Below the pieces are notes generated by a model, which was not told the DNA's origin, searched no databases, and saw nothing but the letters and a program-made list of their open reading frames with translations. A stretch of 64,000 bases of DNA from Hyalangium minutum (GTDB lineage: Bacteria; Myxococcota; Myxococcia; Myxococcales; Myxococcaceae). The translations under genes and the position numbers were made by a program. Shown here piece by piece: positions 12,796-49,634 of this stretch. The DNA is taken from assembly GCF_000737315.1 (NCBI RefSeq), contig NZ_JMCB01000010.1, forward strand, positions 248,001-312,000, written 5' to 3'. Each line of letters starts with the position of its first letter. The first letter of the stretch is position 1.

Positions 12796-12803
12796 ATCAG
12801 GCC

Positions 12804-28073: not shown

Positions 28074-30479
28074 TCAGTCCTCGACGAACACGGTGAGCGG
28101 CTGGCTCACCTCCGCGTGCCGGGACATGGCTGCGGTGATGACGTGCCGGCCCGGCGTCACACTCCACCGGTACTCGTGGGGATAGGCCACGGTGGCCACC
28201 GGCACTCCATCCACGAGCCACACGATCTGCTCCGTGCTCGGCGTCACCTCCGCCTCCAAGCGCAGCGTCGAGGAGGAGGCCGGAGTGTCTGGATCGAAGA
28301 GCAGCCGCACCGTGCCGCGCGGCTCCCGGATTGCCACCTTGGGCATCACGGACTCCTCACGGCTCGGGCACAACGGACTCTCCTGCCTGGGCGCGAGGTC
28401 CAGGTGCTGGCTCCTCGCCCACCGCGTGTACGTGTCCGGCAGGTCCAACATCACACGGCTGATGATTTCGGACGCAGGACACGTGGCCCCCGCCCGCAGC
28501 CCGTTGCGCCGATCCAGCTTCACCTGTGAGTGGAACGGACAGCGCTCCGTGGGCGCACTGCCGGGGAAGAACCACTCGCTCTTGCGGTGAGGACAGTCCG
28601 TGCTCGCGAGCCGGCCCGACAACGGGCAGACATCCACCGCCACCGCTCCATCGGGTGGCGGAAACACATCGAGGATCGGCTGCCAGGGCCGGTGACTCGC
28701 CATCACCCTGTCCATGATCCGGTGCGCCGCCACCGCCGCACCATTCGCTCCGCCCACGCCCCGCATGCGCCGCCAGTCGTGGTTCCCCACCCACACCGCC
28801 ACGAGCAACCGATCGCTGAACGCCACCGTCCAGGCATCACGGTAACCCTGGCTCGTGCCGGTCTTCACCGCCACGGCATAGGGAAAGTCCAAGGGTCCTC
28901 CCACCGGGAACATGGGCCGGCGTGCCTGTGGATCCGAGAGCAGATGCCGGACCAGCTGCGCCGTCTCCCGGTGGAGCAACCGCTTCGGAGCGGCCGAGGG
29001 CTCATCCACGAAGCGGCGCAGCGGCAGGCTCTCGCCCTCTCGCGCCAGGGCGCCGTACAGCCGTGCGAGTTCCTCCAACGTCACGGGCAGGTTCCCCACC
29101 GCAAGTCCCAGGCCGTACCGATCCGGCTCCCAACCGATGTCCTTCACCCCCGCGCTCTCGAAGAAACGCAGCGCGGGCTCCACGCCCACCTCCGAGAGCA
29201 CCCGGAGCGCGGGGATGTTGCGCGAGTTCGCCAGCGCCTCCCGCAGGAGCATGGGGCCCATGAAGGTGTGGTTGATGTTCTCCGGCAAATACGCCCCGAT
29301 AGAGTCACTGCGCACCTCCATCTGCGTGTCCGGGAGCTCGGAGGCGGCCGTGAATGCTCCCTTCTCCAGTCCGAGCGCATAGATGAACGGCTTGAGCGCC
29401 GAGCCCGGTGAGCGCTTCGTCACCACGAAGTCGATGGCGCCCTTGTGCTCCTCGGAGAAGAAGTCCCGCGAGCCCACCCACGCGAGGATGTCGCCCGTGG
29501 CCGTGTCCACCACCAGCGCGGAGGTGTTCCCCGCCCCCGAGTCCTCGATCCGCCGCAGGTTGTCACGGAGGATCGAGGCCACCTGCTCCTGGATCTCCAG
29601 ATCGAGCGTCGCCACAGAGATGGGAGCCTGTCGGCGCTTCGCCTGCGCGCTCCACTCCAGCACGGCGTGCATGGCCTCAGGCTGGCGGCGTGGACGAGAC
29701 ATCAATCCCAGGTCCGCCTGGAGCGCCTGATGAAGTTCCTCAACCGTCAGGAAACCCTTGTTCCGAAGCTCCCGCAGGATCCGGTGGCTGCGCTTCCGCG
29801 CGCGCTTCAGCCCGTCCGGAGTGAAGGGGTTCATGCGCCCCGGCATCTGCGGCAGCCCGGCAAGGAAGGCCGCCTGGGCCCACGAGAGATCCTCCACTGG
29901 CTTGTCGAAGTACAGCCGCGAGGCGCGGGCCACCCCGTGCGCCCGGTTCCCGTACGGCGCGAACGTCAGGTACTGGCGCAGCACCTGCTCGTGTCCGTGC
30001 CCTCGGATGAGCAACAGCGCCTCCAAGGCCTCCGCGGCCTTCCGCGGCAAGGTGCGGTCTCCCGGAGACTGAATGCGCGCCACCTGCATCGCGAGCGTGG
30101 ACGCGCCCGAGATGACCCGGCCATTCCTCACATTCTGCAGGACCGCGCGCCCCACGGAGGGCAGGTACACGCCGGGGTGCTCGTAGAAGTACTGGTCCTC
30201 GGTGACGAGCGTCGCCGCGACCACCCGCTCGGGCATGACGTAAGGCAGCGGCCAATACCCCAGCTCTCCATCTCCCGCGGGCACCTCGCCGAGGTACCGG
30301 CCCCGACGATCGAGGATGAGCCGAGAGGGCTCCACGGAGTGGAGCGTGTCGTCCAGCGCGCGGACGTACAGCCCCGCGGCACCGGCCAGCAGCATCGTGA
30401 GCACCGCCCACGTCCGCTTCGATCGCAGCCGAGGTGTGAGGCGCCGAAGGAACGCCATCGCTGTGCGCTTAGTGCTCAT
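28074..30479 (-). CDS. pbpC: Penicillin-binding protein 1C (transglycosylase + transpeptidase + C-terminal domain)
   Basis: TG motifs EDQYFYEHPGV, SGASTLAMQVAR; TP motifs SALK, SRN, KTGTS; C-terminal WLVDG module; directly follows the alpha-2-macroglobulin gene. Confidence 0.92.
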   Translation of the reverse strand: MSTKRTAMAFLRRLTPRLRSKRTWAVLTMLLAGAAGLYVRALDDTLHSVEPSRLILDRRGRYLGEVPAGDGELGYWPLPYVMPERVVAATLVTEDQYFYEHPGVYLPSVGRAVLQNVRNGRVISGASTLAMQVARIQSPGDRTLPRKAAEALEALLLIRGHGHEQVLRQYLTFAPYGNRAHGVARASRLYFDKPVEDLSWAQAAFLAGLPQMPGRMNPFTPDGLKRARKRSHRILRELRNKGFLTVEELHQALQADLGLMSRPRRQPEAMHAVLEWSAQAKRRQAPISVATLDLEIQEQVASILRDNLRRIEDSGAGNTSALVVDTATGDILAWVGSRDFFSEEHKGAIDFVVTKRSPGSALKPFIYALGLEKGAFTAASELPDTQMEVRSDSIGAYLPENINHTFMGPMLLREALANSRNIPALRVLSEVGVEPALRFFESAGVKDIGWEPDRYGLGLAVGNLPVTLEELARLYGALAREGESLPLRRFVDEPSAAPKRLLHRETAQLVRHLLSDPQARRPMFPVGGPLDFPYAVAVKTGTSQGYRDAWTVAFSDRLLVAVWVGNHDWRRMRGVGGANGAAVAAHRIMDRVMASHRPWQPILDVFPPPDGAVAVDVCPLSGRLASTDCPHRKSEWFFPGSAPTERCPFHSQVKLDRRNGLRAGATCPASEIISRVMLDLPDTYTRWARSQHLDLAPRQESPLCPSREESVMPKVAIREPRGTVRLLFDPDTPASSSTLRLEAEVTPSTEQIVWLVDGVPVATVAYPHEYRWSVTPGRHVITAAMSRHAEVSQPLTVFVED

Positions 30480-33400
30480 TGGCTCCCTGGATCACGACGC
30501 GCAGGCCCTCGCCACGGCCGCGAACCTCCTCGCGGTACATCTGCTCGGCATAGGCCGCGGGATGAACGAACGAGCCCTCCGTCGCCGCGCGGACGCGGAA
30601 GTGGAACGTATGGGTGCCCTTGGGCAGTTGCAGGAAGTAGTAGCGGACCTCGTGGTCCAGCCGCTGCACGTACGCCGGTGAGATCGAGTCCTCCTGAGAG
30701 GGCTTCGCGTCCGAGCCCGCGTTCTCGAGCGCGGGGTTGAGCGGCTCGAGCCCCGCGGCGAATGGCACCACGAACGCGACATGAGGCCGCGCCTGATCGT
30801 TCACCAGCTGCGCATGGATCTCGAGGATGTCCCCCACCTTCAGCGTCTGCGTCTCCCCGGCCTTGTCCTGGAAGCGGGTCTGGTCCGAGCCATCCGCGTG
30901 CAGGTGCGTCGCGCCGCGGGAGACGAGGAACCCGCGCTGGATCGACGTCACCTTGTCGCCCGACACGGCAGGCACGTACTGGTACGCAACGCGCACCCCC
31001 ACAGGCCCGCCCGTCACCGTGGCCTCCAGCGGCTTGTCCGAGACAATGGAAGCCTTCGCCGTCTTGGTCTCCCCGTTCACGGTGAGCGTCTTGCCGGACG
31101 AGAGGGCGATGGTGGAGTTGGGCACGTTGGGCTTGGCGCGCTCCAGGTAGATGGCCAGCGCGGCGATGGCGCGCCGGTTCTCATAGGTGCTGGGGAAGCC
31201 CTTGGTGGCGTTGGCGTAGGAGAGCAGCGCGTCTCTCACCAGATCGTGCCGGGGATCGGTGGGGTCCAGCCGCAAGAGGGCCTCGAAGACGGCGGCGACC
31301 ATGGCGGGCTCGGACGAGAGATAGCCATAGCCCCAGTAGTTGCGGCCCTGCTTGATACCCTCGAAGACCTGCTTGCCGCGGCTGAGCTTGATGATCACCC
31401 GGTCCCACAGCTCGCTCTTCAGCGCGTCCAGGTTGGTCCGGTAGACCTTCGGCTGCAGCGACATGGCGCTGGCCAGGTCCGCCAGCGCCATTGCATCCAT
31501 GTGCTCGCGCTCGTGGAACAGCCCGACGAGGTAGTGCTCGTCCATCGAGCCAGCCCAGGAGAGCGCCCGGAGCGCGGAGACCTGCTGGTTGTAGCGCCAA
31601 TCCGGGATCAGCCCTGGGTAGTCACTGCGCAGCACGCGCTGGAGCGATGCGGTCGCGCGCTCCAGGAGCTTCCCGTCCACCGGAATTCCGGCGCGCCGGG
31701 CGGCCTGCAGGAACTCCACCGCCTGAGACGTCACCTGCACATCGCCAGGGCCGCCAGGCCAGAACGCGAACAGGCCGCTCGAGTCCTGATAGGTGGGCAT
31801 CTCCTCCTGGAGCCGCTTCACGTGGAGGCCGAGCTGCTTCGTGAACGGGGTCTCCACGCCGAGCTGCTTGAAGAGGAGGCTCTGCACCACGTCCGGGTAG
31901 AGCTTCGACATCTTCTGCTCGAGGCAGCCGTGCGGGTACGCCGCGAGGTACTCCACACCCGAGAAGAGCTCGAGCACGCCTGGGATGGACGAGGCGACCA
32001 CCTCCTGGGAGGCCGTGCCGGGCCGGGTGGGCTCGGGGATGGCCTTCAGCGCCGTCTTCCCCGCCTTCAGCGTGTCGAAGTATGCGAACTGCTCGGCGAC
32101 GCGATCAGGGAGCACGGGCAGCTGCACCTCGAACGCGTCCCCAGCCTTGTCGGCCTTGCGCTCCACATCCACGCGGACGGTGAGCGTGTGGGGCTTGGAC
32201 ACGTCCGCCTCCTTCACCTGGATGGGTGTGACGAACGACATCGCCTTGTTGAGCTGCAGCTCCACGGCCTGGTTGAAGGGCCTGGCCTCCACCGGCCCCG
32301 AGAGACGGATGCTCACCGCGCCCGGGCCGCCGTTGCCCTCGACGACGCGCCCCACCGCTCCGCCCCAGAACCGGTCGCCCTGGCGGACGAAGCGCGGCAG
32401 CTGCGGCTGCACCAGCACTGGCAGCCGCACCTTGAGCGTCTGCTGCTTGAACCCGAACCGCTGTGCCCCGGACGCCGCCACCGCGCGCACTCGGAAGTTG
32501 GTCAGGTCATCCGAGAGCGGCACCTCCACCGTGAGCCGGCCAGACGCAGGCACCTGCACGGTCGCCTGGTAGTAAGGCACGGTCTGGAAGTTCTTCCGCA
32601 CGATGCGCTTGCCGCTCATCACATTGGCCTCTTCCTCGTCGCCATCGCCGCCCGGATCCTCCTGCTCGAAGAGCTTTCCCACCAGGCTGTTGCGCGTGTC
32701 CCTCAACGTGGTGCCCCGGGCGTTCCGGGTGATGAACGCGCTCAGCGGATCCAGCGGACCTTCGGGCGCCAACGAGAGCACGGCCTCGTCCACGAGCCAC
32801 AGCGTCACCTCGCCCGCCAGCGGCGCGCCCTTCTCATCCTTGAGCGACAGCTCCACGGGGATCTTCGTCCCAGGCCGCGCCGTGTCCGGATGCTTGAGGT
32901 CCACCAGCACTTGATTGCGGATGGGCTCCACCTCGATGTCGATCGACGCCCCGAGCGTCTGCGGCCGGTACCGGGCGTCCTCCGTCTTCCCCTCCCCCAG
33001 CCGGCCACGCATGAGCGCCACGTGCACGGCGATGTTCGGAACGTGGTTGCCCTTGATGGGCAGCTCGTACACCGCCTTGCCGCCGGAGACCTCGCGCCAG
33101 GTGTACGTGTTGCCGCCCGGCTCCTCGACAACGACCAGCGCGCGGCCCTGCTGGAACGGGCTCTGGATGATGATGCGCGCGGTGTCCCCCGGCCGGTACT
33201 TGGGCTTGTCCGTGGCCAGCTCGAAGACGCCCTGGCGCGGCTTCTTCCACGCCATCGGCGTCTGCCCGCCCACATACAGGTCCGCCGAGAGCGTCTGCAC
33301 CCGGCCCAGCTTGTCGCGGGCGACCAGCTCCACCACGTACACGCCCGCCTCCTTGAGCCCGAACGTGGGCGACACTGGCTGCATGTCCGTCGTCACCACC

Positions 33401-36213
33401 TGCTCGCTCAGCTTCACATCCTCCTGCTCCGTCACGTACCGGGCGTCGCCGGTGGCGAAGTGCGTCTCGCGGAGCTGGCTGTGCCAGACGCGCCGGAACA
33501 GCCGCACCGTCACCTCCTGGCCCTTGATGGACTTGTCATCCACGCCCACGGCGACGATCTCCGGCTTCAGCTCGAAGGGCTTGTCCGAGTAGCGCGGCAG
33601 CTTCATGCCCAGCACGAAGGGCGGCAGCGCCTTCACCTCCGTGACGGCGGACACCGGCTGGTTGTCCGCGCCCGTCACCGTGGCCTCGAAGCGGTAGACT
33701 CGGGCGCTGCCGTCCAGGTCCAGCGCCGGGTTCACCTGGATCTCGTCCGCACCGCCCTCGTCCAGCTCCGCGTTCCGGCGGATGCTCTCCGGGGCGCGGC
33801 TCTGGCCCTCGCGGGCGAACTGGGTGCTCGACGCGAAGAGGAACCCCTCCCGGCCCTTCGGCACGTAGTAGTGCGGCCGGCGCGTCACCGTCCACGCGAT
33901 GGGCTGCCCCGCGACGTTGCCGCCCGCGTAGTAGCGCGCCACCGCCTTCACCTTGAACGGCGCGTCCAGCCGCACGGTGCTCGCCGCCGAGAGCTGCACC
34001 TCGAACTGCGGGACGCGGTAGGCCTCGATCTGGAACGAGCGCCGGGCCACCTCGGTCCCCGTGCGCGTCCCCACCAGGACGGCGTGGAACTCTCCCGTAG
34101 GCACGTTCTTTTCGTCGAACTCCGCGGAGACGCCCAACGCCGAGACCTTCGTCTCCAGCTGCCAGTGCTGATCCCCTGGCCCATCGACCCGCACCACATA
34201 GTCCTCGAGGTCTCCAGCGAGCCGCAGCTCTCCTCCGACCTTCCGCCGCGCGAAGCCCTTGATAAAGACCTTCTCACCGGGCTTGTAGATGGGCCGCTCG
34301 GTGAAGATGAACCCGAGCAGCGCATCGTTCCGAGGCGGAGGGATTTGCTGGCCAATCCACTCGAGGAACCCGGACGACGGGGACCAGTGGTTCTGCGCGA
34401 AGGCGGCGGGTGGCTCGCGCGGATCCAACACGAGGATGTCTTCACCGCTCTGGACCGAGATGCGCTTGATGCTCTCCCAGTCCGTCTGAGGCCCCAGCAT
34501 CGCACGCCCGCCCTCGTCCGTGGTGAGCGGCAGCGCGAACGGCACGGAGATCGTCCCCCCATAGTTCTTCGGATCTGGTGCGCGGCGCATGCCTTCAATG
34601 ACGATCTTCGCGCCACGGATCTCGCGGGCCTCATCCAGGCTACGAACGAAGAACAGGGCGCGTTCGCGCTCCTCTACCGCCGTGAGAGAGAGGTTCGTCA
34701 CCTGCACGCGGACATAGGCCCGCTCGGGCGCCCCCGTGAGCCGACGCAGGCCCACGAGGTACGAGCCCGGACGCTGGCGGCCCACGGCCTCATCCAGCAG
34801 GGGTCCCAGATCGAGGCCGAACGCCGTCGTCCCACTCTTGCTCGCGAGCGGCAGGTCCACCACCCGGGAGATCAGCGGCGAGCCCAGCAACCGCACATGA
34901 GCCTGCAGCTCTTCCGCTCCGATGTAGCCCGCGGTGTTGGCGGGCGTGGACGGCTCCTCCCCCGGGAACGGCGGCGCACTCTCCTCGTTGATGACAACGG
35001 GGCGCGCAGGAAAAGGCCAGAGGCCCTCGTGGAGCGGATCGATCCGGTAGATGCGCACGTCCGCACGCGCATCCCCGTAGCCCTGGAGCGGCAACATCCG
35101 AGGCCCCTTGGACTCGATGATCGCCTGCGACTGGCCCCAGCGCAGGAACGGGGCCTTCCACCCGAGGTGGAAGAACACCTTCACATCCCCGGGATCGCGC
35201 AGCGGGCGGCCGCTGTCGTCCCGGATCGGCGCGGAGGCGATCCGCATCTGGTAGAGCGTGTCCGGGACGAACTTGCCGCGCAGCGCAACGCGGCTGCCGT
35301 AGCTCTCGAAGTGCATGTCCGGCACGGCGGGCTCCAGGCGCACCAGCTTCTTGAGCGCGGTGAGCGTCAGGTCCTGCACGTTCGCGGAGAAGACGAGCTG
35401 CGGCAGATCACCCTGGTTGCCACACGAGAGCGCCATGTCCCGAGGCACCGAGGCCCCACCCACCAGCGCGAATGTGGCGGAGCTGCACTGGACGGACTGG
35501 AGGTGGAACGCGGGACGGGTGGACAGCCGGCCCGTCCAGAGCATCTTGTCCTCGTCCCCGAGCGCCAGGCTCACCGTCACCCGGAGCTGCTTGCCCTCGG
35601 GCACGTCCTCGTCGAGCGTGACGGCGTAGACAGCCGGGCTGCGCTGGTTGTCCCGAGGCAGCTGCGAGAGGTTGAAGTCCTTCACCACCCGCGTGGGCGA
35701 GTCGGCCAGCCCAGGCAGGTCGCGGATCTCCAGCTTGAGCATCTGCTTGAGCGCGGCGAGCGGCAGCGGCTGCGGGAACGTGAGGGTCAGCGTGCGAAAC
35801 GGCCTCAGGTCCGTGCTGCCCGCGTGGGGAGCCATGGTGGACGGCGCGGACATCATCGTCGTCAGCACCTTGCGCGCGCCGCGGGTCTCGAAGGCGAAGC
35901 GCTGCAGCGGAGGCCACGGCTCGGCAGGCCGGAACTGGAGCGTCTTCTTGTCCGCCCAGAAGTACTGGCCGGGCCACGAGGGTGTGATCTTCAGCAGCTT
36001 CGCCCCGTCGTCCGCCGGACGCTTGCCGGGGCCCTCGTTGTCGGGGAAGTACACGGTCACCGGGTCGAACCCGCGCAGGAACTGCTCGGGGAGGATCCGG
36101 GTGGAGCCGCCCTCGGGACGCTGGCTCTCGTCAGCAGGGCGGTAGTCCTGGGCCGCCGCGGGGAAGACCGCGAGCAGGACCAGGAGCATGGTGGCTCTCG
36201 GGAAGACGGACAT
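30469..36213 (-). CDS. Bacterial alpha-2-macroglobulin with intact thioester motif
   Basis: FIFTERPIYKPGE, AYRVPQFEV, VTLWLVDEAVLSL, SDDLTNFRVRAVA, YPHGCLEQ thioester, VPFAAGLEPLNP, RAATEGSFVHPAAYAEQMY; ATG overlaps upstream TGA (TGATG). Confidence 0.93.
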   Translation of the reverse strand: MSVFPRATMLLVLLAVFPAAAQDYRPADESQRPEGGSTRILPEQFLRGFDPVTVYFPDNEGPGKRPADDGAKLLKITPSWPGQYFWADKKTLQFRPAEPWPPLQRFAFETRGARKVLTTMMSAPSTMAPHAGSTDLRPFRTLTLTFPQPLPLAALKQMLKLEIRDLPGLADSPTRVVKDFNLSQLPRDNQRSPAVYAVTLDEDVPEGKQLRVTVSLALGDEDKMLWTGRLSTRPAFHLQSVQCSSATFALVGGASVPRDMALSCGNQGDLPQLVFSANVQDLTLTALKKLVRLEPAVPDMHFESYGSRVALRGKFVPDTLYQMRIASAPIRDDSGRPLRDPGDVKVFFHLGWKAPFLRWGQSQAIIESKGPRMLPLQGYGDARADVRIYRIDPLHEGLWPFPARPVVINEESAPPFPGEEPSTPANTAGYIGAEELQAHVRLLGSPLISRVVDLPLASKSGTTAFGLDLGPLLDEAVGRQRPGSYLVGLRRLTGAPERAYVRVQVTNLSLTAVEERERALFFVRSLDEAREIRGAKIVIEGMRRAPDPKNYGGTISVPFALPLTTDEGGRAMLGPQTDWESIKRISVQSGEDILVLDPREPPAAFAQNHWSPSSGFLEWIGQQIPPPRNDALLGFIFTERPIYKPGEKVFIKGFARRKVGGELRLAGDLEDYVVRVDGPGDQHWQLETKVSALGVSAEFDEKNVPTGEFHAVLVGTRTGTEVARRSFQIEAYRVPQFEVQLSAASTVRLDAPFKVKAVARYYAGGNVAGQPIAWTVTRRPHYYVPKGREGFLFASSTQFAREGQSRAPESIRRNAELDEGGADEIQVNPALDLDGSARVYRFEATVTGADNQPVSAVTEVKALPPFVLGMKLPRYSDKPFELKPEIVAVGVDDKSIKGQEVTVRLFRRVWHSQLRETHFATGDARYVTEQEDVKLSEQVVTTDMQPVSPTFGLKEAGVYVVELVARDKLGRVQTLSADLYVGGQTPMAWKKPRQGVFELATDKPKYRPGDTARIIIQSPFQQGRALVVVEEPGGNTYTWREVSGGKAVYELPIKGNHVPNIAVHVALMRGRLGEGKTEDARYRPQTLGASIDIEVEPIRNQVLVDLKHPDTARPGTKIPVELSLKDEKGAPLAGEVTLWLVDEAVLSLAPEGPLDPLSAFITRNARGTTLRDTRNSLVGKLFEQEDPGGDGDEEEANVMSGKRIVRKNFQTVPYYQATVQVPASGRLTVEVPLSDDLTNFRVRAVAASGAQRFGFKQQTLKVRLPVLVQPQLPRFVRQGDRFWGGAVGRVVEGNGGPGAVSIRLSGPVEARPFNQAVELQLNKAMSFVTPIQVKEADVSKPHTLTVRVDVERKADKAGDAFEVQLPVLPDRVAEQFAYFDTLKAGKTALKAIPEPTRPGTASQEVVASSIPGVLELFSGVEYLAAYPHGCLEQKMSKLYPDVVQSLLFKQLGVETPFTKQLGLHVKRLQEEMPTYQDSSGLFAFWPGGPGDVQVTSQAVEFLQAARRAGIPVDGKLLERATASLQRVLRSDYPGLIPDWRYNQQVSALRALSWAGSMDEHYLVGLFHEREHMDAMALADLASAMSLQPKVYRTNLDALKSELWDRVIIKLSRGKQVFEGIKQGRNYWGYGYLSSEPAMVAAVFEALLRLDPTDPRHDLVRDALLSYANATKGFPSTYENRRAIAALAIYLERAKPNVPNSTIALSSGKTLTVNGETKTAKASIVSDKPLEATVTGGPVGVRVAYQYVPAVSGDKVTSIQRGFLVSRGATHLHADGSDQTRFQDKAGETQTLKVGDILEIHAQLVNDQARPHVAFVVPFAAGLEPLNPALENAGSDAKPSQEDSISPAYVQRLDHEVRYYFLQLPKGTHTFHFRVRAATEGSFVHPAAYAEQMYREEVRGRGEGLRVVIQGANEH

Positions 36214-39200
36214 CACGGGTTCACTCCAATCCGCTGGAAGAAGTTGCGCAGGTACTCCTCGGGGACGTCGGCCTTGGCGCCGGCGAGCCCCACGAGGACG
36301 GGCTTGAACTTGAGGGGACGCGCCGTGGAGGGCGCGTGGACGGCGAGCAGGTAAGCGCCCTTGTCGAGCTGCAGGAACTGCTGACAGCCCTCGCCGAGCA
36401 CGCGCTGCTCCAGATCGAGCACGCTGCACTCGAGCAGCTCGGCGGGCACCTGGAGCCCGAGGCCGATGCGGCCAGGGGACTCCGTGGAGAACCGGAAGAA
36501 GCGTGTCTGCGAGGGCGAGATCCAGCTCTCCTCGCTCGCCACGCCCTCCTTCAGCTCCTGGATGAGTTCCTGGGTCCAGCTGAGGTGGCCGGAGAGTGTG
36601 CGATCCGCGAAGCCGCGCACGGCCAGGCGGTAGTTGCCGGGCTTGAGCACCTCATCCAGCGCGCAGCCCTTCTCGCTGCCCTGGACCCGGATGGGCGTGC
36701 TGTCCTGGACGATGCCACACACGCCCGAGTCCGACCGGACATGCACCACCGCCTCGGACACGAGCGTGAAGGAGCGATCCACGCGGGAGCCGCTCAGCTT
36801 GAGCGCCTGGGCTGGGGGCAGAACCGGCGACTGGGCCGAGAAGCTCCCCAGGGCAGCGCTCAGCAGCTCGGTGGGCGGGGTAAGCACAGCGCGGACACCT
36901 CCAATGCCCAGGTCCACCACCGACTCTCCAGAGCGGCCCGGCGGGATCCGGGTCTCGCAGCCCTCCAGCCGGGCTCCATTGTCGAGCGTCGTCACACAGC
37001 GAAGCGCGCCCGTGATGCTCAGCAACCGAGGTGCAGGCTGCGCATTGAACACGAGGCGCTGCTGCGAGGGTCTGGTGCTCACCGCCTCGAACAGGCGATC
37101 CAAGGTCTCGCGGCGCGGCGTGGGATCGATCGAGACCAACTCGGACTGCACGCGCTGTTCCTCGGGAGCGTAGACGAAGAGGGAGCCTCCCTTGCCCGTG
37201 AGCACGCAGGCCGCGAGGCTCGAAGCGGGCGCGCAGAGATCCACCGCCCTGCCCTGCTCATCCACCTGCACGGCCCAAGCACTCTTCGGCAGGGTGAGCT
37301 GTACCCGCGAAGGCGTCGACAGCATGCGCAGCTCGATCGCTGGCCCCTGAGACCAGACGAAGTTCTGCCCCCCCTGCTGCAGCGAGGCCACGACCGAGGG
37401 AACGGGCACCGAGAGCCGCATCAGGGACGCATCACTCGGGCTGAAAGCGGGCGTCCACCACCGTGCCAGGGACTGCTGGGTGGGCCCCGTGGCCGCCACG
37501 CACATGAAGTCATCCTGACGAGCCGTCCCGCCCACGAGTGCACAGGCGGGGTTGCTCCGGTCTCCCACCTGCACAGTGGCCTGGAAGAGGTGCAGCGCGG
37601 AGGCCTTGCTCGACTGTCGCAGCAGCGAGACGTCGCGGGTGAGGCGGGCGCGCTCCGTCTTGGGGCTGTCGATCGCGTCCACCACCTCGCTGAGCTTCAG
37701 CGCGGTCTCCTGCGTCCCGGCGCCACTGAAGATCCACTCGCCCGCCTCCAGGGAGACCTCATCCGCGCAGTTCCGCAGCGCCCCCTTCTGGCCCGAGGGC
37801 AGGCAGTACACTCCCGCGCCCGTCTGATAGCGGCCGGGCTGTGGAATCTTCGCCAGCACCGCCGCTCCCGCCGGAATGCTGCCGCCGGAGGAGGAGGCCA
37901 GCGTGCGAGTGACCAGTGAGGCCGTCACCTGGGCGCTGCTGTCCATCGTCCACACGCGCACCCGCCAAGCAGCACCGCCGGGCCGGACGAGCAGCACGCA
38001 CTCGCGCGTGTCGAGCTGCCGCGTGACAACCGCACCCTGGTCATCCTCGAGCGCGCAGGCAATGGCCGTCTTGGAGCGAAGCGTGAGCTCCTGCACCCCG
38101 TCCCCCGCCACCGCGGGGAGCATGGCGCGCTGCACGCCCGCATCCAGCTTGAGCGCCATCGGGTCCGCGAGCGTGCCTGCATCCGTCATCTTCGCCACCG
38201 CGACCGAGACGCGCGTCGGGCCGGGCTGCTGCGTCTGGCTCTCGAGCACCAGCGTGTAGTCCCCGGCGGCGAACGGCTCGGCGATCGCGCAGTTCCAGTC
38301 CGCACCACGGTCAGCGTTCTCCACGACCAGGCGGCCCTCGCTGTCGAAGATGCGGCAGCGGACGTCCGTATCGCCTCGCGTGGAGAGCCGCAGCGTGCCC
38401 TCGGCCGGCAATCGCAAAGGGAGCCGGTCGGGCACATTCACCACGCGGACCACCCCAGGCACCAGGACATCGACACGGAGGTAGAGGGCATAGGTGATCG
38501 CCACATCACCGCGGCTGTGCTCGGTGATCAGCCGGTACGTTCCCGGCTGCAGCTTCAACGTCCTGCCCGCAGGCGCGGGGGCATCGGTCTCCGGCAGTGG
38601 TCCCTCAGAGGAACTCGAGGATTCGTCAGGCACCTCCTCGGCGTAGGACGGCTCGGGTGGCGGCGCCTCCTCGTAGCTCTCCTCGGACGAACCCTCTCCC
38701 TCTTCCCCTTCCTCGGACGTGGGCTCCGGTGGCGGCACATCCGTGCGAACCCGAGGCATCGTCACGCCCTGCGGACGCGTCAGGTCCGGCGTCATCGGGG
38801 CGATCGTCTCCACCGGCTTGAGCTGGTTGTCCGCACCCACCCGGTAGAGGCGCCCCTGCATCCCGTGCGTCAGCGCGAAGGCGACGTCCACCGGTGCGGG
38901 GAGCTCGAACGAGAACTCGTCCTTGCCATCCTTGCCCAGCTCCACGCGAGACCAGGCGTTGAACGGCAGCGGGTGCATCTTGTTGCCCTTGAGCGTCACG
39001 GTGGGCCGCACCCGCTCGAGCGACGTGCGCCGCATGCTCTCCACCGTGAGCGGGAGCTGCGTCCAGAGGTAGTTCCCGGACGCGAGCCTCATCGTGCTCG
39101 TGCAGGGCGAGGGAATGGGCACCACTGGCCAGCCCTGCGGATCATCGAGCCGGCACTGGAGCGAGCCGCTCTGCGCCGCGGTGCTCAACATATAAGCGCC

Positions 39201-41501
39201 CTGCTTGGGCACGCGGAGCTTCTGCTGGATGAGGTCTCCCGCATCGGCGCGGAAGAAGACCTCCGCCTCGCCGCCCAGGCCCTCCGCGGGCTTCACGGCG
39301 CGGCGATCGAGCACCACCGCGCCCCGGCCCCGGCTCTGGCCCGCCGTGCGCACATCGAGCAGGTAGCGTCCGGGACGCAGGTACGTGGAGACGAGGCAGT
39401 TGCGCCCACGCCCTCCTCCCGACGCTGCTCCCACCTGTTGCACCACGGGCGTCCGGATGTGGCACTCGGTGGACAGCAGGCCCTGGGTCGTCACGTGGTA
39501 GAGCCCGGCGTCCTTCACATGGAAGACGAGCGCGTGCGACTGCTCCCGCTCGAAGTCGAGCCACATGGGGGTCTCCGTCCCGAGCACCGGCAGCGGCGCG
39601 AGGCTCGGGCTCCAGGCGAGCAGTGGCGGCGGCGCCGCGGGAGGAGGAGCCGGCCGGCGCAGAGAGAGCGTGAGGGCCGAGGTCCCCGGGTTCTCGAGCG
39701 TGAGCTCCCCGCCCGTGCCGGGCACCGTGCAGAGCCCACCCTGGGTGTTCACCCGCGTCTCACCGAGCGAGCACTGGAACGGCTCACCACTCAGCGCGCG
39801 GATCTCCACCGGCCTGCCCGCACTCAACGGGAGCTTCAAGCTCTTGCGCCCGTTGAGAACCAGCGCCAGGGGCTCGCTGAGAGTGAGCGGCAGCGGACGG
39901 AGGAACAGGCCCCGGACCGCCTTCTCCGAGTTCCGGGTGGTGCTCATCAGGTAGCTCCCCCCCGCCCGCAGTGACACCCTTGGGAAGAGGCAGGACACCT
40001 TGGTGGCCGTCTCCGTCGTGGGCGGTGGCCCGTCCGCCGCGAGCGTCACCGTCTCGATGCCCTCGGTCCCTCCAAAGAGGCGAAGCTCGTACATGCCCGG
40101 CGTCGCGGGAAAGGCGACGCGGCAGGTGACGGCACTCGGCTGCGTCTCCGTGAGCCGCGAGGTCTGCTTGCCGTCGTAGCGGAACAGCTCGCAGCGGGTC
40201 TTCCGCTCGCCAGCCGTCTGGACGACATAGCGCCCGGAGCGGGTGACCTCGAACTGCAGCGTGGAGGAGCTGCCGTTGTAGTTGAAGGCGCGGCGGAACG
40301 GGCGGTCCGGGCTCACCTCCAGCAGGTCCCTCCCCCGCTGCACGGAATCGGCCATCACGAACACCTCGTTCAGCGTGCACCCCACGGGGGCACTGTCCTG
40401 ATCGAGCGGCGTCTCATGAACCGCGACGAGGTAGTCCGCGTCCTTCTCCGCGACGAAGCTGATGGCCTGCGCTCCGGTTCCGTAGACGCCATCCCGCCAC
40501 GCTCCGTCCAGCAGGCGGGCCCACCGCAGCGTCACGCGGGTGCCAGGCTCGCCCCGGATGAGCGCGACCCGGCGGCTCTTGCTCCGGGCGAACGCGCTGC
40601 ACTCGGGGACAAGCGCCTTGCCGTCGATCTCACAGCTGGACTCAGCCGAGGCGAACAGGTTGGTGGCTCCATTCTCCCTCATGGAGTGCAGGCTCAGGCG
40701 CGTGGTGGACTTGGAACTACCCTCGCGAGAGAGGAAGAACGCAGAGGGCTCGTTGGGAAACTCCAGCGTGGCGAGCCCCGTCTCCGGCAGGGTCAGGCTG
40801 GCCTGCCGATCCTCGGAGGCCTGGGGGAAGCCCCACGCCACCGTGAGGCCCGAGTCGTCCCCCCCACTCTCGGTCCACTCCGTGGAGGCCGTGCCATACG
40901 CGGTCAGCAGGTACACGCCGGGCTCCAGCAGGGTCTCGAACCACCACTCGTGGAGGGGCATGCCGGGACGCGGGCGCGGGGAGGTGTCTCTCGCGGCGAT
41001 GGGCTCCAGCCACTCCCCCGTGCGCCACAGCCGCACGTCTCCGGCGTGCCGCCCGGCAATGCGCAGCGTCACCGGCTGGCGCTCGTCGATCTTGAGCCAG
41101 TACGAAGCTTGCTGGCGTGGCTTCAGGTGCTGCTGCACCTCGCGCCGAGGCTCCAGGCGCAGCGGCGGGGCATTGATCTCCTCGTACGGCCTCACGGACA
41201 GGGCGACGTTGCCCTTGCCCTTGGGCTTCGAGGTGAGCCGCAGCTTGTAGGTGCCCGCGTCCAGCAGCAGGTCCAGCTCACAGCTGGAGCGGCCCACGGT
41301 TCCGGACTGCGCAAAAGGCCCTCGGACGTGGTCGACGATCTCGCAGGCCGTGCCCGCGGGGCTGGAGGCCTTGACGACGTACCGCCCGGCCTTGTCGAGC
41401 GTCAGGATGGCCTCCTGGGCGCCTCGGGCGGGGACGGCCGGAGGCGAGACCGAGGCGGCATGGAGCAACAGCAGGGGGAGCGTGATTAGCGGCAGGCTCA
41501 T
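36213..41501 (-). CDS. Giant secreted hypothetical protein (1762 aa) of repeated PPC/Ig-like beta-sandwich modules
   Basis: At least 8 modules of type F/L-x-V-x-x-x-G-x-Y...C...C...L-x-x-G-x-Y-x-L; hydrophobic N-terminus; acidic Pro/Glu/Ser insert. Confidence 0.85.
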   Translation of the reverse strand: MSLPLITLPLLLLHAASVSPPAVPARGAQEAILTLDKAGRYVVKASSPAGTACEIVDHVRGPFAQSGTVGRSSCELDLLLDAGTYKLRLTSKPKGKGNVALSVRPYEEINAPPLRLEPRREVQQHLKPRQQASYWLKIDERQPVTLRIAGRHAGDVRLWRTGEWLEPIAARDTSPRPRPGMPLHEWWFETLLEPGVYLLTAYGTASTEWTESGGDDSGLTVAWGFPQASEDRQASLTLPETGLATLEFPNEPSAFFLSREGSSKSTTRLSLHSMRENGATNLFASAESSCEIDGKALVPECSAFARSKSRRVALIRGEPGTRVTLRWARLLDGAWRDGVYGTGAQAISFVAEKDADYLVAVHETPLDQDSAPVGCTLNEVFVMADSVQRGRDLLEVSPDRPFRRAFNYNGSSSTLQFEVTRSGRYVVQTAGERKTRCELFRYDGKQTSRLTETQPSAVTCRVAFPATPGMYELRLFGGTEGIETVTLAADGPPPTTETATKVSCLFPRVSLRAGGSYLMSTTRNSEKAVRGLFLRPLPLTLSEPLALVLNGRKSLKLPLSAGRPVEIRALSGEPFQCSLGETRVNTQGGLCTVPGTGGELTLENPGTSALTLSLRRPAPPPAAPPPLLAWSPSLAPLPVLGTETPMWLDFEREQSHALVFHVKDAGLYHVTTQGLLSTECHIRTPVVQQVGAASGGGRGRNCLVSTYLRPGRYLLDVRTAGQSRGRGAVVLDRRAVKPAEGLGGEAEVFFRADAGDLIQQKLRVPKQGAYMLSTAAQSGSLQCRLDDPQGWPVVPIPSPCTSTMRLASGNYLWTQLPLTVESMRRTSLERVRPTVTLKGNKMHPLPFNAWSRVELGKDGKDEFSFELPAPVDVAFALTHGMQGRLYRVGADNQLKPVETIAPMTPDLTRPQGVTMPRVRTDVPPPEPTSEEGEEGEGSSEESYEEAPPPEPSYAEEVPDESSSSSEGPLPETDAPAPAGRTLKLQPGTYRLITEHSRGDVAITYALYLRVDVLVPGVVRVVNVPDRLPLRLPAEGTLRLSTRGDTDVRCRIFDSEGRLVVENADRGADWNCAIAEPFAAGDYTLVLESQTQQPGPTRVSVAVAKMTDAGTLADPMALKLDAGVQRAMLPAVAGDGVQELTLRSKTAIACALEDDQGAVVTRQLDTRECVLLVRPGGAAWRVRVWTMDSSAQVTASLVTRTLASSSGGSIPAGAAVLAKIPQPGRYQTGAGVYCLPSGQKGALRNCADEVSLEAGEWIFSGAGTQETALKLSEVVDAIDSPKTERARLTRDVSLLRQSSKASALHLFQATVQVGDRSNPACALVGGTARQDDFMCVAATGPTQQSLARWWTPAFSPSDASLMRLSVPVPSVVASLQQGGQNFVWSQGPAIELRMLSTPSRVQLTLPKSAWAVQVDEQGRAVDLCAPASSLAACVLTGKGGSLFVYAPEEQRVQSELVSIDPTPRRETLDRLFEAVSTRPSQQRLVFNAQPAPRLLSITGALRCVTTLDNGARLEGCETRIPPGRSGESVVDLGIGGVRAVLTPPTELLSAALGSFSAQSPVLPPAQALKLSGSRVDRSFTLVSEAVVHVRSDSGVCGIVQDSTPIRVQGSEKGCALDEVLKPGNYRLAVRGFADRTLSGHLSWTQELIQELKEGVASEESWISPSQTRFFRFSTESPGRIGLGLQVPAELLECSVLDLEQRVLGEGCQQFLQLDKGAYLLAVHAPSTARPLKFKPVLVGLAGAKADVPEEYLRNFFQRIGVNP

Positions 41502-41733
41502 GGAGGCTTTCGCGCGGGGTTTGCGCGGAGCCTCAACAGCAAGGCACGGGCCAACTCACGCCTCGCCCCAACAGGGCTGCGGCGTGGCACCCCAGCCACG
41601 AGCCCGTGGCCTGATGACCACTGGCTCCTGCGACTCCTCCCTGGCGCTCTCCGGCGAGCCACACCCCGGGACATCTCCTGGCTTGCCTGGCCAGAGCGCC
41701 TCTGTTCAGCATGAGACTCGGAGGAAGAACCCC

Positions 41734-42876
41734 ATGAGCAGCCTTGGCAACACCGGAACAGACGCAGCCGCCACCCGTCCCCCCAGCAGCCTTCGCACCT
41801 ATACCCTCGCGGGCCGCCGAGGCCTGCGAATCTCGCCCCTCTCCCTGGGGGCTGGAACCTTCGGCGACGGCTGGGATCCGGCCTGGCAGTCACCTCCCGG
41901 CGAGATCGACCGCATCCTCGGGACCTACCTGGACGCGGGCGGCAACGTGATCGACACGGCGGACCGCTACCAGAACGGCCGGAGCGAGGAGCTCGTGGGC
42001 ACCTACCTGCGCAAGTCAGGCCGGCGAGACGAGGTGGTGCTCGCGACGAAGTGCGGCTACGGGGTGCCCGGTGACGCCCACCAGGGAGGCAACGCTCGCC
42101 TGACGTTGCAGCGGGCGCTGGAGGCGTCGCTGCGCAGGCTCGGGACGGACGTGATCGACCTCTACCACGTGCACCTCTGGGACACGTTCACGCCCGTGGA
42201 AGAGGTCATGTCGACGCTCGACACGTTCGTGCGGGCGGGAAAGATCCGCTACGTGGGGCTGAGCAATGTGCCCGCGTGGTACCTCGGGCGGGCGCAGACA
42301 CTGGCCGAGTGGCGCGGCTGGGAGCCGGTGGCGGTGTTGCAGGTGAACTACAGCCTGCTGGCGCGCACCATCGAGTACGAGTTCGTCGATGCGGCGCAAG
42401 AGCTGGGGATCGGCCTCACGGCCTGGAGCCCGCTGGCCAACGGCCTGCTCAGCGGCAAGTACCGGGTGAACGAGCAGGGCCAGTTCGAGGGACAGGGGCG
42501 CGTCACGAAGACGTGGGTCACCGACACGACGGTCGAGCCCACGGCCCAGACGAAGCAGGTGCTGGACATGCTCGCGGCCACGGCGGCCGAGCTCGGGCGG
42601 ACACCGGCCCAGGTCGCGTTGAACTGGGTCACGAACCGGCCGGGCGTCGTCTCCACCGTCATCGGTGCGCGAACCGAGGCGCAGCTCCGCGACAACCTCG
42701 CGGCCCTGGACTTCGAGCTGCCGCCAGCGTTCGCGGCCAGGCTCGACGAGGCAGGAAAGCCCCCCGCGCAATACCCCTACTCGTTCTTCACCGATCAGTT
42801 CCACGACGCCACGGTGCGCGCGGGCCTCCCCATCCGGAGCGAGCCCCGGGGCTATCGCGGCCGGGGCTTCCGCTGA
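41734..42876 (+). CDS. Aldo/keto reductase
   Basis: SPLSLGAGTFG, IDTADRYQNGRSEE, LATK, SLRRLGTDVIDLYHVH, GKIRYVGLSN, WSPLANGLLSGKY. Confidence 0.93.
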   Translation: MSSLGNTGTDAAATRPPSSLRTYTLAGRRGLRISPLSLGAGTFGDGWDPAWQSPPGEIDRILGTYLDAGGNVIDTADRYQNGRSEELVGTYLRKSGRRDEVVLATKCGYGVPGDAHQGGNARLTLQRALEASLRRLGTDVIDLYHVHLWDTFTPVEEVMSTLDTFVRAGKIRYVGLSNVPAWYLGRAQTLAEWRGWEPVAVLQVNYSLLARTIEYEFVDAAQELGIGLTAWSPLANGLLSGKYRVNEQGQFEGQGRVTKTWVTDTTVEPTAQTKQVLDMLAATAAELGRTPAQVALNWVTNRPGVVSTVIGARTEAQLRDNLAALDFELPPAFAARLDEAGKPPAQYPYSFFTDQFHDATVRAGLPIRSEPRGYRGRGFR

Positions 42877-42917: not shown

Positions 42918-44678
42918 ATGTTCCAAGCCCCCCTCTTGGTGCTCCTCATGACCACCGCCACGGCCGCCCCCTCCGATACTCCTGCCTGGACCGAGCAGCA
43001 CGCCGCGCAGATCCTCGAGAAGACCCAGACGATCCAGCTTGCGCCGGACCTGTCCACCCTCACTCCGGGTGAGCGCACCGCCCTCTCCAAGCTCCTGGAG
43101 GTGGGGCAGCTCTTCCAGCAGGTCTACGAGGACTCGCGGCACCGGAAGGCGCTCGAGCTCCACAAGCGGCTCGATGGCCAGAAGGGTCCGGCCGCGGAGC
43201 AGCAGCGCCTGTTCTACACGCTGTTCCAAGGCCCCATCGCCACCACGCTGGAGAACCAGCGGATTCCCTTCCTGCCCACCGACTCCATCGTCCCGGGCAA
43301 GAACGTCTACCCCTGGGGCATCACCAAGGAGCAGGTGCAGCAGGTGCTGGAGCGCCACCCGGAGCTCCGCGCTTCGATCCTGGATGTCCGCACCGTGGTC
43401 CGCAGGGCCGATGCCGCATCGCTGCGGAAGGACCTCGATGCGCTGAAGCAATACCCTGTGCTCGACGGGCTCCATCCCGGGCTGAGCGCCAAGCTCCGCG
43501 CGCTGGCCGCGAAGCCGGACCCGGCGATGCTGTACGCCGTGCCCTATGCCGTCGCTTACGCACCGCAGATGGTGAAAGCCCACTCGCTGCTCTGGGAGGC
43601 CGCCTCGGCCGTGGAGGCGGATGACGCCGAGTTCGCCGGCTACCTGCGCAACCGCGCGCGGGATCTGCTCGCCAATGACTACGAGTCTGGAGACGCGGCC
43701 TGGGTACGAGGCCGGTTCCAGCGGCTCAACGCCCAGATCGGCGCCTACGAGGTCTATGACGACGAGCTCTTCGGCTCCAAGGCGTTCTACTCACTGAGCG
43801 TGCTGCTCCGGGATGATGCGGCAACGGCCAGGCTGGAGAAGGCGCTCCAGGGGCTGCAAGCCTTCGAGGACAGCCTGCCCTACGAGCCCCACAAGACGGT
43901 GAGCTCGGACATTCCCGTGGGCGTCTACCAGGTCATCGCGGACTTCGCGCAGGCGCGGGGCACGAACACCGCCACGATCCTCCCCAACGATCCGCTGCAC
44001 GCGCGGCGGTACGGGCGGACGATCCTGCTGCGCTCGAACATCATGAAGCACCCCAGCCTCTTCGCGAATGGGCGCTCGGCGTGGGAGGCGGTGATGGCCG
44101 AGCCGTTCCGCAACCACCTCGGTCCCAGCGGCGGCTTCAACCGGACGCTCTGGCACGAGGTGGGCCACTACCTCGGTGTGGATCGCGACGTGAAGGGGCG
44201 CGCGGTGAGCAGCGATGCGCTGGAGGAGAACTCGAGCGCCCTGGAAGAAATGAAGGCGGACCTGGTGTCGCTGTACCTCGCCCAAGCGCTGCGCGAGCGC
44301 GGCTTCTATGACGACACCACCCTGCGTGAGCTCTACGCGAGCGGCATTCAGCGCGTGCTGCAGATCGTCCGTCCGAGGCGAGACCAGCCGTACCAGACGA
44401 TGCAGCTCATGCAGATGAACTACTTCCTGGAAAACGGGCTGCTGGAGTCCCGCCCGGACGGCCTCCACATCCACTACGAGAAGTACCCCGAGGTGGTGGG
44501 CCGGCTGCTGCGCGAGGTGCTGGCCATCCAGCGCGCCGGAGACAAGGCGGCCTCGGATCGGTTCATCGAGAAGTACACCCGCTGGGACGACGCCCTCCAT
44601 GGCGCCCTGGCCACGAAGATGCGCGCCCAGCAGAAGTACCGCTACACGCTCGTGAAGTACGAGGCGCTCGGCCAGTAG
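42918..44678 (+). CDS. Secreted Zn-dependent hydrolase, peptidase M49 (DPP III)-like
   Basis: IGAYEVYDDELFGSKAFY, TNTATILPND, LWHEVGHYLG, ALEEMKAD; N-terminal signal ..ATA. Confidence 0.8.
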   Translation: MFQAPLLVLLMTTATAAPSDTPAWTEQHAAQILEKTQTIQLAPDLSTLTPGERTALSKLLEVGQLFQQVYEDSRHRKALELHKRLDGQKGPAAEQQRLFYTLFQGPIATTLENQRIPFLPTDSIVPGKNVYPWGITKEQVQQVLERHPELRASILDVRTVVRRADAASLRKDLDALKQYPVLDGLHPGLSAKLRALAAKPDPAMLYAVPYAVAYAPQMVKAHSLLWEAASAVEADDAEFAGYLRNRARDLLANDYESGDAAWVRGRFQRLNAQIGAYEVYDDELFGSKAFYSLSVLLRDDAATARLEKALQGLQAFEDSLPYEPHKTVSSDIPVGVYQVIADFAQARGTNTATILPNDPLHARRYGRTILLRSNIMKHPSLFANGRSAWEAVMAEPFRNHLGPSGGFNRTLWHEVGHYLGVDRDVKGRAVSSDALEENSSALEEMKADLVSLYLAQALRERGFYDDTTLRELYASGIQRVLQIVRPRRDQPYQTMQLMQMNYFLENGLLESRPDGLHIHYEKYPEVVGRLLREVLAIQRAGDKAASDRFIEKYTRWDDALHGALATKMRAQQKYRYTLVKYEALGQ

Positions 44679-48257: not shown

Positions 48258-49634
48258 TCAGGCGGCCCGGGCCTCGGGGAGGCGCAACGTCTGGAGCTTC
48301 TCGGCCAAGAGGAAGGCGAGTTGGAGCGCCTGATCCGCGTTGAGGCGCGGATCGCAGTGGGTGTGGTAGCGGCTGGACAGGTCGTCCTCGGTCACCGCCT
48401 GGGCTCCTCCGAGGCACTCGGTGACATTCTGCCCGGTCATCTCGAGGTGGATGCCTCCCGGGTGGACGCCCTCCGCGGCGGCGACCTGGATGAAGGTCCT
48501 CACCTCCGTGAGGATGCGGTCGAAGGGCCGGGTCTTGTAGCCGTTGCCCGCCTTGAGCGTGTTGCCGTGCATCGGATCGATGGACCAGATGACGGAGCGT
48601 CCATCGCGCCGGGTCGCGTCCATCAGCCGAGGCAGACAATCGGCGGCCTTGTCCGCGCCGAAGCGGCCAATGATCGTCAGCCGCCCGGGGATGCTCTCGG
48701 GGTTGAGCCGATCGATCAACCGCAGCAGATCATCCGGCTCCATCGAGGGGCCGCACTTGAGGCCAATGGGGTTCTTGATGCCGCGCATGAACTCCACGTG
48801 GCCGCCGTCGATCTGGCGGGTGCGCTCGCCAATCCACAGCGTGTGCGCGGACATGTCGTACCAGTCCCCCGTGTCCGGATCGGCGCGGGTCATGACCTCC
48901 TCGACGTTCAAGAGGAGGGCCTCGTGGCTGGTGAAGAAGTCCACCTGGCTCAAGGCGTTCGCCTGCTCCGTGTTCATGCTGAGGGCGCGCATGAAGCAGA
49001 GGGACTCGAAGATCTGATCCGCCAGCTGGCGGTAGCGATCCCCCTGCGGGCTCCCGGCGATGAAGCCGAGCATCCACTGATGGATGTTGCAGAGGTCCGC
49101 ATAGCCCCCCTGCGAGAGGGAGCGCAGCAGGTTCAGCGTCTCCGAGGACTGGTGATAGGCCCTCAGGAGGCGCTTCGGATCCGGCGTGCGCTCGTGGGGA
49201 GCGAAGTCCATGCCGTTGATGATGTCGCCGCGATAAGACGGCAGTGTCACGCCGCCCTGGGTCTCCAGCGGGCTGGAGCGCGGCTTGGCGAACTGGCCGG
49301 CGATCCGGCCGACCTTCACCACCGGACGTCCCCCCGCGAAGGTGAGCACCACCGCCATCTGGAGGATGAGCCGGAAGGTGTCGCGGATGTTGTCGAGGGT
49401 GAACTCCTTGAAGCTCTCCGCGCAGTCACCGCCTTGCAGCAAGAACGCCTTGCCCTCGGCGACCTGGCCGAGCGCGGACGACAAGCGGCGGACCTCGGAG
49501 GCGGTCACGAGCGGAGGCAGGTGCGACAGCTCTTCCTCCGTGCGGGCGAGCGCGCGGGGGTCGGGATAATCCTCTGGGAGCTGTTGGACGGGACGGGCTC
49601 GCCAAGACTGGGGGGTCCAAGCTCGGGGCATCAT
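48258..49634 (-). CDS. Class II DAHP synthase (3-deoxy-7-phosphoheptulonate synthase; AroAA5-like)
   Basis: [74 protein letters not shown]. Confidence 0.95.

Follow-up and report, generated by a model that had tools for sequence, protein, structure and literature searches.

To our knowledge, only two types of bacterial alpha-2-macroglobulin (A2M) system have been described, one in which a lipoprotein A2M with a thioester is paired with PBP1C (type I), and one in which MagD, an A2M without thioester, is accompanied by the Mag partners (type II). The functional link between A2M and PBP1C has, for its part, been hypothetical since it was first inferred from the adjacency of their genes. The present analysis concerns a 64,000-nucleotide stretch of the Hyalangium minutum genome (assembly GCF_000737315.1, contig NZ_JMCB01000010.1, positions 248,001 to 312,000; hereafter the window, in whose numbering all positions are given), where an A2M gene and a PBP1C gene are preceded by a third gene encoding a protein of 1762 amino acids (aa), referred to here as the giant. 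Neither a three-gene A2M system nor the giant gene is described in the open-access literature searched. Judged from its sequence, the locus shows a third configuration, in which a thioester A2M with a pbpC neighbour and no lipid anchor is accompanied by one very large dedicated partner.

In the type I systems, represented by E. coli ECAM/YfhM-PbpC and Salmonella Sa-A2M, ECAM is a lipoprotein (PMC3735191), and a logic of protease trapping and wall repair, which the locus would share, has already been proposed for the two-gene A2M-PBP1C pair (PMC5764988; PMC3735191). In the type II system of P. aeruginosa (MagABCDEF), the partner proteins bind MagD and control its stability and localisation (PMC5764988; PMC3735191). 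The locus has traits in common with both. With type I, it shares a CxEQ A2M built of macroglobulin (MG), bait-region and bMG10 domains and, after it, a pbpC of the same orientation, but its A2M has no lipobox and is only remotely similar to YfhM, and the classical pairs lack the 1,700-2,200-aa gene that always precedes the A2M clade of the window. With Mag, it shares what appears from the genes to be a soluble periplasmic A2M, free of a lipid anchor and provided with dedicated partners. Nonetheless, MagD has no thioester and is not encoded beside pbpC, whereas the A2M of the window has both, which places the locus outside the type II/Mag definition; and in place of the several small partners of the Mag system, the sole partner gene of the window encodes a giant without any Pfam family, those of the Mag partners included. 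Since it has a thioester and a pbpC neighbour but no lipid anchor, the A2M of the window is best read as mixing type I traits (thioester, pbpC) with a type II trait (a predicted soluble protein with a dedicated partner).

The A2M and PBP1C genes and their coupling to the giant

The three genes lie consecutively on the minus strand: the giant at 36213-41501, the A2M at 30469-36213 (1914 aa) and PBP1C at 28074-30479 (801 aa). A previous sequence-only reading of this stretch had described them as overlapping open reading frames (ORFs), and both junctions are indeed present in the sequence. The stop codon of the giant and the start codon of the A2M share the pentanucleotide TGATG (36211-36215, minus strand), with a GGAG situated 10 nt 5' of the A2M ATG, and the end of the A2M gene overlaps the start of PBP1C by 11 nt (ATGAGCACTAA, 30469-30479, minus strand). 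The ORF of the A2M extends over 30469-36429 (minus strand), its actual start being the ATG at 36213. In the case of PBP1C, an alternative in-frame ATG (Met8, 30458) would replace the overlap by a 10-nt gap, but the start at residue 1 is preferred because close relatives align from there. In a region with a GC content of about 68%, the three genes presumably constitute one operon, which would encode a three-part envelope module.

The A2M carries the full set of traits by which type I is defined, that is, the MG/bait-region/A2M/bMG10 domains, the CxEQ motif and an adjacent pbpC on the same strand. Its Pfam domains are all above cut-off (PF17973, bMG10, 109 bits; PF07703, A2M_BRD, 66 bits; PF00207, A2M, 47 bits; and PF01835, MG2, 44 bits), and its CLEQ thioester motif (residues 1430-1433; 31915-31926, minus strand) is kept in every A2M homologue sampled (every sixth of a list of 120). 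Within the surrounding GC(L/T)EQ block, G1429, C1430, E1432 and Q1433 are invariant in seven A2Ms of different lineages. The protein is 87% identical to the A2M of H. gracile, and its single match among the sequences of the PDB is E. coli YfhM, with an E value of 2.7e-6 and covering only the thioester domain. PBP1C, in turn, is recognised by the equivalog TIGR02073 narrowly above threshold (497.5 bits versus a cut-off of 494.2), has the Transgly (PF00912), Transpeptidase (PF00905) and BiPBP_C (PF06832) domains, an N-terminal membrane anchor at residues 24-39, and intact motifs for both the glycosyltransferase (EDQYFYEHPG, matching EDxxFxxHxG) and the transpeptidase (SALK for SxxK, SRN for SxN, and KTG).

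The trait in which this A2M departs from ECAM is the lipobox cysteine, a feature by which ECAM is described and which membership of the type I family does not formally require. The N-terminus of the window A2M, MSVFPRATMLLVLLAVFPAAAQ, contains no cysteine and so has no lipobox in the style of ECAM/YfhM. The same applies to its relatives: a relaxed lipobox pattern occurs in only 5 of 120 myxobacterial giant-linked A2Ms, none of them convincing, the cysteine lying in all five within the hydrophobic core and ahead of an AxA site, and no lipobox is present in any of the giant-linked A2Ms of seven further loci. Giant-linked A2Ms have an ordinary signal peptide followed by a conserved mature N-terminus, where the motif FLRGFDPVT of the window (residues 45-53; 36055-36081, minus strand) corresponds to FLR[RG][WFY]DP[VI]T, one of the two patterns derived from the alignment of these proteins and present in every giant-linked A2M N-terminus inspected. 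Among A2M-PBP1C pairs without a giant, a lipobox-like cysteine is found in 12 of the 19 whose N-terminus is complete.

Conservation of the gene order and distribution of the giant family

Starting from the giant, the synteny set comprises 78 genome loci, all of Myxococcota. The A2M is the next gene on the same strand at all 70 of those with downstream DNA, and PBP1C follows as the third gene at each of the 62 with room for it. The same order is kept in seven of eight further loci, which belong to an Anaeromyxobacteraceae metagenome-assembled genome (MAG; L079), Terriglobia (L080/L081), Thermoanaerobaculia (L082), two metagenomic lineages (L083 and L084), Dongia sp. agr-C8 (L085) and a gammaproteobacterial MAG (L086), and in four of these seven (L079, L083, L084 and L086) giant and A2M overlap by 4 nt. 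In sum, the succession giant, A2M, PBP1C recurs at about a hundred loci of Myxococcota, Acidobacteriota and Pseudomonadota, and the genes flanking the three-gene unit are not conserved.

The relationship also holds in the opposite direction. When metagenome contigs were scanned with an A2M profile, yielding 79 loci, the giant or its C-terminal part was found at all 21 loci that have upstream DNA and an A2M at least 43% identical to a giant-linked one (four more loci of this clade begin at a contig edge and are outside the 21). Distant A2Ms (22-29% identity), on the contrary, have a giant in none of about 45 loci, many of which offer 8 kb of sequence on the upstream side and a PBP1C gene downstream. 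This difference argues that the giant marks a distinct clade of A2Ms, and not A2M-PBP1C pairs in general. The neighbourhood analysis is therefore strongly favourable to the co-occurrence with A2M and pbpC anticipated in the sequence-only reading, as the giant is almost never found apart from the pair, and the proposal of a dedicated third component gains support at the genomic level from the synteny seen from both ends and from the absence of a characterised family for the giant. Very probably, then, the giant is a conserved and co-expressed third component of the A2M-PBP1C module.

Some loci of these scans deserve a separate mention. In one of them (L109:925-4588), about 3.6 kb separate the C-terminus of the giant from the A2M, and in another (L065:21123-23506) the A2M is separated from PBP1C by about 2.4 kb; both may be operon insertions. 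Furthermore, the thioester pattern retrieved from the metagenome scan a class of shorter A2M-like ORFs (L141, L144-L150, L154, L156, L158-L160, L164 and L166), measuring about 1,150-1,400 aa from the upstream stop to the end of the match and having neither giant nor PBP1C as neighbour.

How widespread is the giant itself? A word-indexed search returned 132 full-length homologues; among the best 120 of them, all are annotated as 'hypothetical protein', lengths cluster at 1,740-1,790 aa, and the named carriers are Hyalangium, Archangium, Vitiosangium and myxococcal MAGs, the giant of the window being 96% identical to its best match, 81% to that of a Hyalangium sp. and 77% to that of H. versicolor. 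A profile run exhaustively against 1.84 billion representatives of clusters defined at 50% identity gave 1,362 giant clusters at E <= 1e-3 and 710 at E <= 1e-30, most of them of 1,700-1,800 aa. They include giants from Acidobacteriota (Terriglobia and Thermoanaerobaculia), from Alphaproteobacteria (Dongia sedimenti, Dongia sp. agr-C8 and Aliidongia), and from a gammaproteobacterial and a Desulfobacteraceae MAG. The three-gene system is not specific to myxobacteria.

Some of these homologues carry accessory domains. An N-terminal PF07007 (LprI/DUF1311) domain is found in 49 of the 120 listed proteins closest to the Terriglobia giant, and was confirmed above the cut-off of 22 (23-38 bits) in P0378, P0362, P0330, P0343, P0397, P0407 and P0388, some homologues even bearing the NCBI name LprI/DUF1311 family protein; a Pfam scan detected no PF07007 in the giant of the window. 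The 'lysozyme inhibitor' name of this family derives from LprI of M. tuberculosis, whose MliC domain protects against lysozyme, while Salmonella ScwA, a periplasmic PF07007 protein, gives no protection against lysozyme and influences the abundance of wall enzymes, MltD among them (PMC7933661). Many non-myxobacterial giants share this domain with ScwA-type proteins, although there it is a small N-terminal addition to a 1,700-aa body. The label was consequently downgraded as a functional clue, as PF07007 has no demonstrated inhibitor activity (PMC7933661), and the fusions are therefore taken only as a sign that the giant would act in the periplasm, near the peptidoglycan. Two family members, including that of Dongia sp. 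agr-C8, contain a peptidoglycan-binding domain of the OmpA family (PF00691), placed behind the domain that corresponds to residues ~1026-1100 of the window giant; in a pairwise alignment, the OmpA domain of Dongia sp. agr-C8 stands one domain beyond the position of the acidic linker of the window giant.

Architecture of the giant and surroundings of the operon

The giant (36213-41501, minus strand) matches no family of Pfam or NCBIfam, the PADLOC models of known anti-phage defence systems match none of the three proteins, and its family profile retrieves nothing meaningful among the sequences of the PDB (the best hit, at E 0.11, is to an unrelated oxygenase, across the low-complexity insert). 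The sequence-only reading had not recognised this component from described systems and had pointed to a repeated module with a Cys pair. Both observations stand as far as sequence families are concerned: the four modules that it quoted are all found, within a total of 30 cysteines forming 15 consecutive pairs, and the tail pattern [LFVIM]xxGx[YWF]x[LVIMW] matches eight times. A self-comparison of the profile (hhalign, alignment of 14 sequences) detects about 11 mutually related segments, with probabilities of up to 93% and E values down to 5e-7; the repetition, with its G-x-Y-x-L hairpin, is thus genuine, although ancient and diverged. Of 43 homologues, 36-42 keep the Cys pairs, which a divergent clade has lost jointly, a pairwise loss that is the pattern expected for disulfides; the 15 pairs are typical of only one myxobacterial clade of giants.

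The giant was modelled with AlphaFold2 in two halves, using an alignment of 43 sequences. Residues 22-915 yielded an all-beta model with a mean predicted local distance difference test score (pLDDT) of 88.7 and a predicted template modelling score (pTM) of 0.79, and residues 975-1762 another all-beta model (pLDDT 88.6, pTM 0.69). Along the chain, an N-terminal hydrophobic, signal-like segment (MSLPLITLPLLLLHAASVSP; 41442-41501, minus strand), which has no lipobox Cys and a putative cleavage site, precedes a first run of about nine beta-sandwich domains (residues 22-905; 38787-41438, minus strand) and, beyond an acidic insert, a second run of about eight with one Cys pair each (residues 979-1735; 36297-38567, minus strand). 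The chain ends in a conserved C-terminal tail (36216-36296, minus strand) with a short helix, VPEEYLRNFFQRIG (residues 1746-1759), modelled in the C-terminal half at model residues 774-783; giants of other phyla have a related tail, PPxEVxxxYLxxxG. The best-conserved parts are residues 31-210, 661-870 and 1021-1080 and the last domain with the C-terminal helix, the block 661-870 containing the motifs GGGRGRN (695-701), CRLDDPQGWP (783-792) and LPLTVESMRRT (816-826). Export is predicted because of the signal-like segment, the 15 conserved Cys pairs, and the signal peptides and periplasmic domains of the homologues. Values of pTM this high for multi-domain chains of 800-900 residues suggest that the domains are packed in a fixed manner rather than strung like beads.

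The two runs are separated by a low-complexity insert rich in Pro, Ser and acidic Glu (residues 906-978; 38568-38786, minus strand), conserved neither in sequence nor in length and flanked by low pLDDT on both sides. Acidic low-complexity inserts are also seen at lineage-specific positions in other giants (P0382, ~343-410; P0329, ~588-650; P0407, ~1240-1290).

As for the fold, Foldseek comparisons of both halves with the PDB gave local matches of probability 1.0 to tandem jelly-roll domains, namely the CUB domains of cubilin, neuropilin and PCPE-1, and the collagen-binding domains of ColG (s3a/s3b); HA70 was a further high-probability local match. Identities are about 7-13%, and the template modelling (TM) score is 0.05-0.2 across the whole model, reaching 0.33 on the target for ColG. 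The PPC family (PF04151) is not detected by a Pfam scan of the window giant; homologues score 20.9-23.1 bits, below the cut-off of 25.9, and eight family members carry precomputed PPC matches. In several homologues, the PPC matches map to the domain equivalent to residues ~1026-1100 of the window giant. On these models, the repeated unit adopts a jelly-roll beta-sandwich resembling PPC and CUB domains, which is no new fold, and the giant is a putatively exported all-beta protein of about 17 PPC/collagen-binding/CUB-like jelly-roll domains. Similar domains form the ColG and CUB arrays, but the fixed arrangement of some 17 of them has no counterpart among the matches.

Other origins for the giant were tried and rejected. 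As a diverged A2M paralogue, it reached a best hhalign probability of 0.2% against the A2M profile, and as a relative of A2M and other thioester-containing proteins (TEP), its Foldseek matches to C3, C4, C5 and A2M had TM scores of 0.05-0.10, a root-mean-square deviation of about 35 A and probabilities of 0.13-0.75. Its domains could not be related to the C-terminal domain of PBP1C either (hhalign probability 0.2%), despite a weak BiPBP_C match in one homologue.

Upstream of the giant, a 235-bp intergenic region (41502-41736), presumed to contain the operon promoter, separates its ATG from a divergent aldo/keto-reductase gene (41737-42876, plus strand; PF00248, 246.8 bits). A search of this region for the sigma-70 consensus found none, which is uninformative for a myxobacterium, and a scan for promoters and terminators was likewise uninformative, with no promoter-like site and no excess of terminator-like sites over shuffled sequence. 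A 131-aa ORF at 41498-41893, overlapping the giant ATG by 4 nt, was considered as a fourth coupled gene and rejected as spurious: none of the related loci has a homologue of it, and it runs antisense to the start of the aldo/keto-reductase and to the downstream intergenic spacer. The operon therefore begins at the giant, after the divergent intergenic region.

Several genes more distant within the window may be recorded as well. Upstream of the operon, the ORF at 42990-44678 (plus strand) encodes a protein of ~560 aa that has no Pfam family and whose conservation is limited to close relatives within Hyalangium, the longer version of this ORF having a sub-threshold zincin-like match (PF18818, 18 bits). 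On the side of PBP1C, a 416-aa homologue of the BlaR1/M56-family peptidase sensors (19296-20546, plus strand; PF05569) is encoded some 8 kb downstream, and further on a protein of 1112 aa (15440-18778, plus strand) that combines numerous TPR repeats with a CHAT (caspase-like) domain at its C-terminus. At 48258-54058 (minus strand), a class-II 3-deoxy-D-arabinoheptulosonate 7-phosphate (DAHP) synthase (PF01474) follows directly, with a 4-nt overlap, a single-module nonribosomal peptide synthetase (C-A-T-R, with a reductase end, 1475 aa); the pair looks like a small secondary-metabolite locus.

The possible role of the giant

What could a protein of this size contribute to an A2M-PBP1C module? 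The sequence-only reading had considered it a putative subunit of a complex, with scaffold, receptor and decoy array as candidate roles. The reading preferred here, with a probability of about one half and by analogy with Mag, is that the giant serves the soluble thioester A2M as a periplasmic partner or scaffold, binding it and perhaps also PBP1C and keeping the A2M stable or in position. The precedent is that of MagB, MagA and MagF, which hold the soluble type II A2M MagD (PMC5764988). According to it, giant and A2M would be made at about the same level and would associate in the periplasm, the giant being a rigid support by which the soluble trap is held, stabilised or positioned close to the peptidoglycan and to PBP1C with its membrane anchor. 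Once lytic enzymes had broken through the outer membrane, proteases would be caught by the A2M and glycan strands rebuilt by PBP1C. On the side of the giant, the candidate interface comprises residues 31-210 and 661-870 and the C-terminal domain with its tail; on that of the A2M, the clade-specific N-terminal FLRxxDPVT region.

Different observations weigh against such a partner or scaffold. In a Desulfobacteraceae MAG (L087, a 17-kb contig), the giant (9059-14443) has no adjoining A2M or PBP1C, being followed by an unrelated 410-aa ORF without Pfam family, although this is the only such member found. Lacking a membrane anchor itself, the giant could be fastened only to the peptidoglycan or to PBP1C. 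The inhibitor name of PF07007 has no experimental backing (PMC7933661) and mainly marks a periplasmic, wall-related setting, and the window giant has neither PF07007 nor OmpA. Finally, a 190-kDa protein of 17 domains seems oversized for a mere tether. It is possible, though rather unlikely, that the giant is an active recognition element, that is, a rigid multivalent platform that would sense or capture lytic enzymes or damaged peptidoglycan, hand proteases over to the thioester trap and recruit PBP1C. If this were true, the giant would be a periplasmic analogue of the pattern-recognition component that partners a complement-like protein, and the locus would stand for a widespread type of A2M system in bacteria, the third after types I and II, in which PBP1C and a 190-kDa multi-domain partner accompany a soluble thioester A2M.

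The size and domain number of the giant would also fit multivalent binding of another kind, in which it does not bind the A2M and works in parallel as a broad binder, inhibitor or sponge for lysozymes, amidases and peptidoglycan-targeting toxins, with the A2M facing the proteases, the giant the wall hydrolases, and PBP1C being in charge of the repair. The recurrent PF07007 fusions and the OmpA domains of two members would be in line with it, as would the fact that PPC/collagen-binding/CUB-like domains bind ligands in solved structures. This division of labour is nonetheless doubtful, since inhibitor activity has not been demonstrated for PF07007 and ScwA did not protect against lysozyme (PMC7933661), a Pfam scan shows no similarity of the giant to lysozyme inhibitors such as MliC, Ivy and PliG, and the loss of the lipid anchor in the linked A2M clade would be left unexplained.

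An improbable alternative makes a sensor or decoy of the giant, with the exposed and disordered acidic insert as a bait which, once cut by invading proteases, would set free or activate the A2M or PBP1C, or would do no more than absorb protease activity. Unconserved acidic inserts do recur across lineages, at differing positions, in a protein that is otherwise rigid and, in the clade of the window, putatively disulfide-stabilised, but precisely because their position varies and some giants (P0397 and P0378) have almost none at the site of the window insert, a conserved function is unlikely to depend on them. Least probable of all is an unrelated role as adhesin, surface or matrix protein, or secreted binder, linked to the pair by mere co-regulation, as the tandem beta-sandwich arrays typical of adhesins and the lack of enzymatic motif and family assignment are outweighed by an adjacency and order kept in at least three phyla while the flanking genes all differ, by a length tightly conserved at 1,700-1,800 aa, unlike that of adhesins, by the absence of visible signals for secretion to or anchoring at the cell surface, and by a high pTM that favours a compact body over a stalk.

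Beyond the role that the giant may have, the third configuration is found in cultured bacteria (Hyalangium, Archangium, Vitiosangium and Dongia) and in very many metagenomic lineages, and a large uncharacterised family, with more than 700 clusters at 50% identity (E <= 1e-30), gains through it a concrete and testable context. With a confident model and candidate interfaces at hand, the locus offers a tractable route to ask whether an A2M, a PBP1C and a partner protein physically associate.

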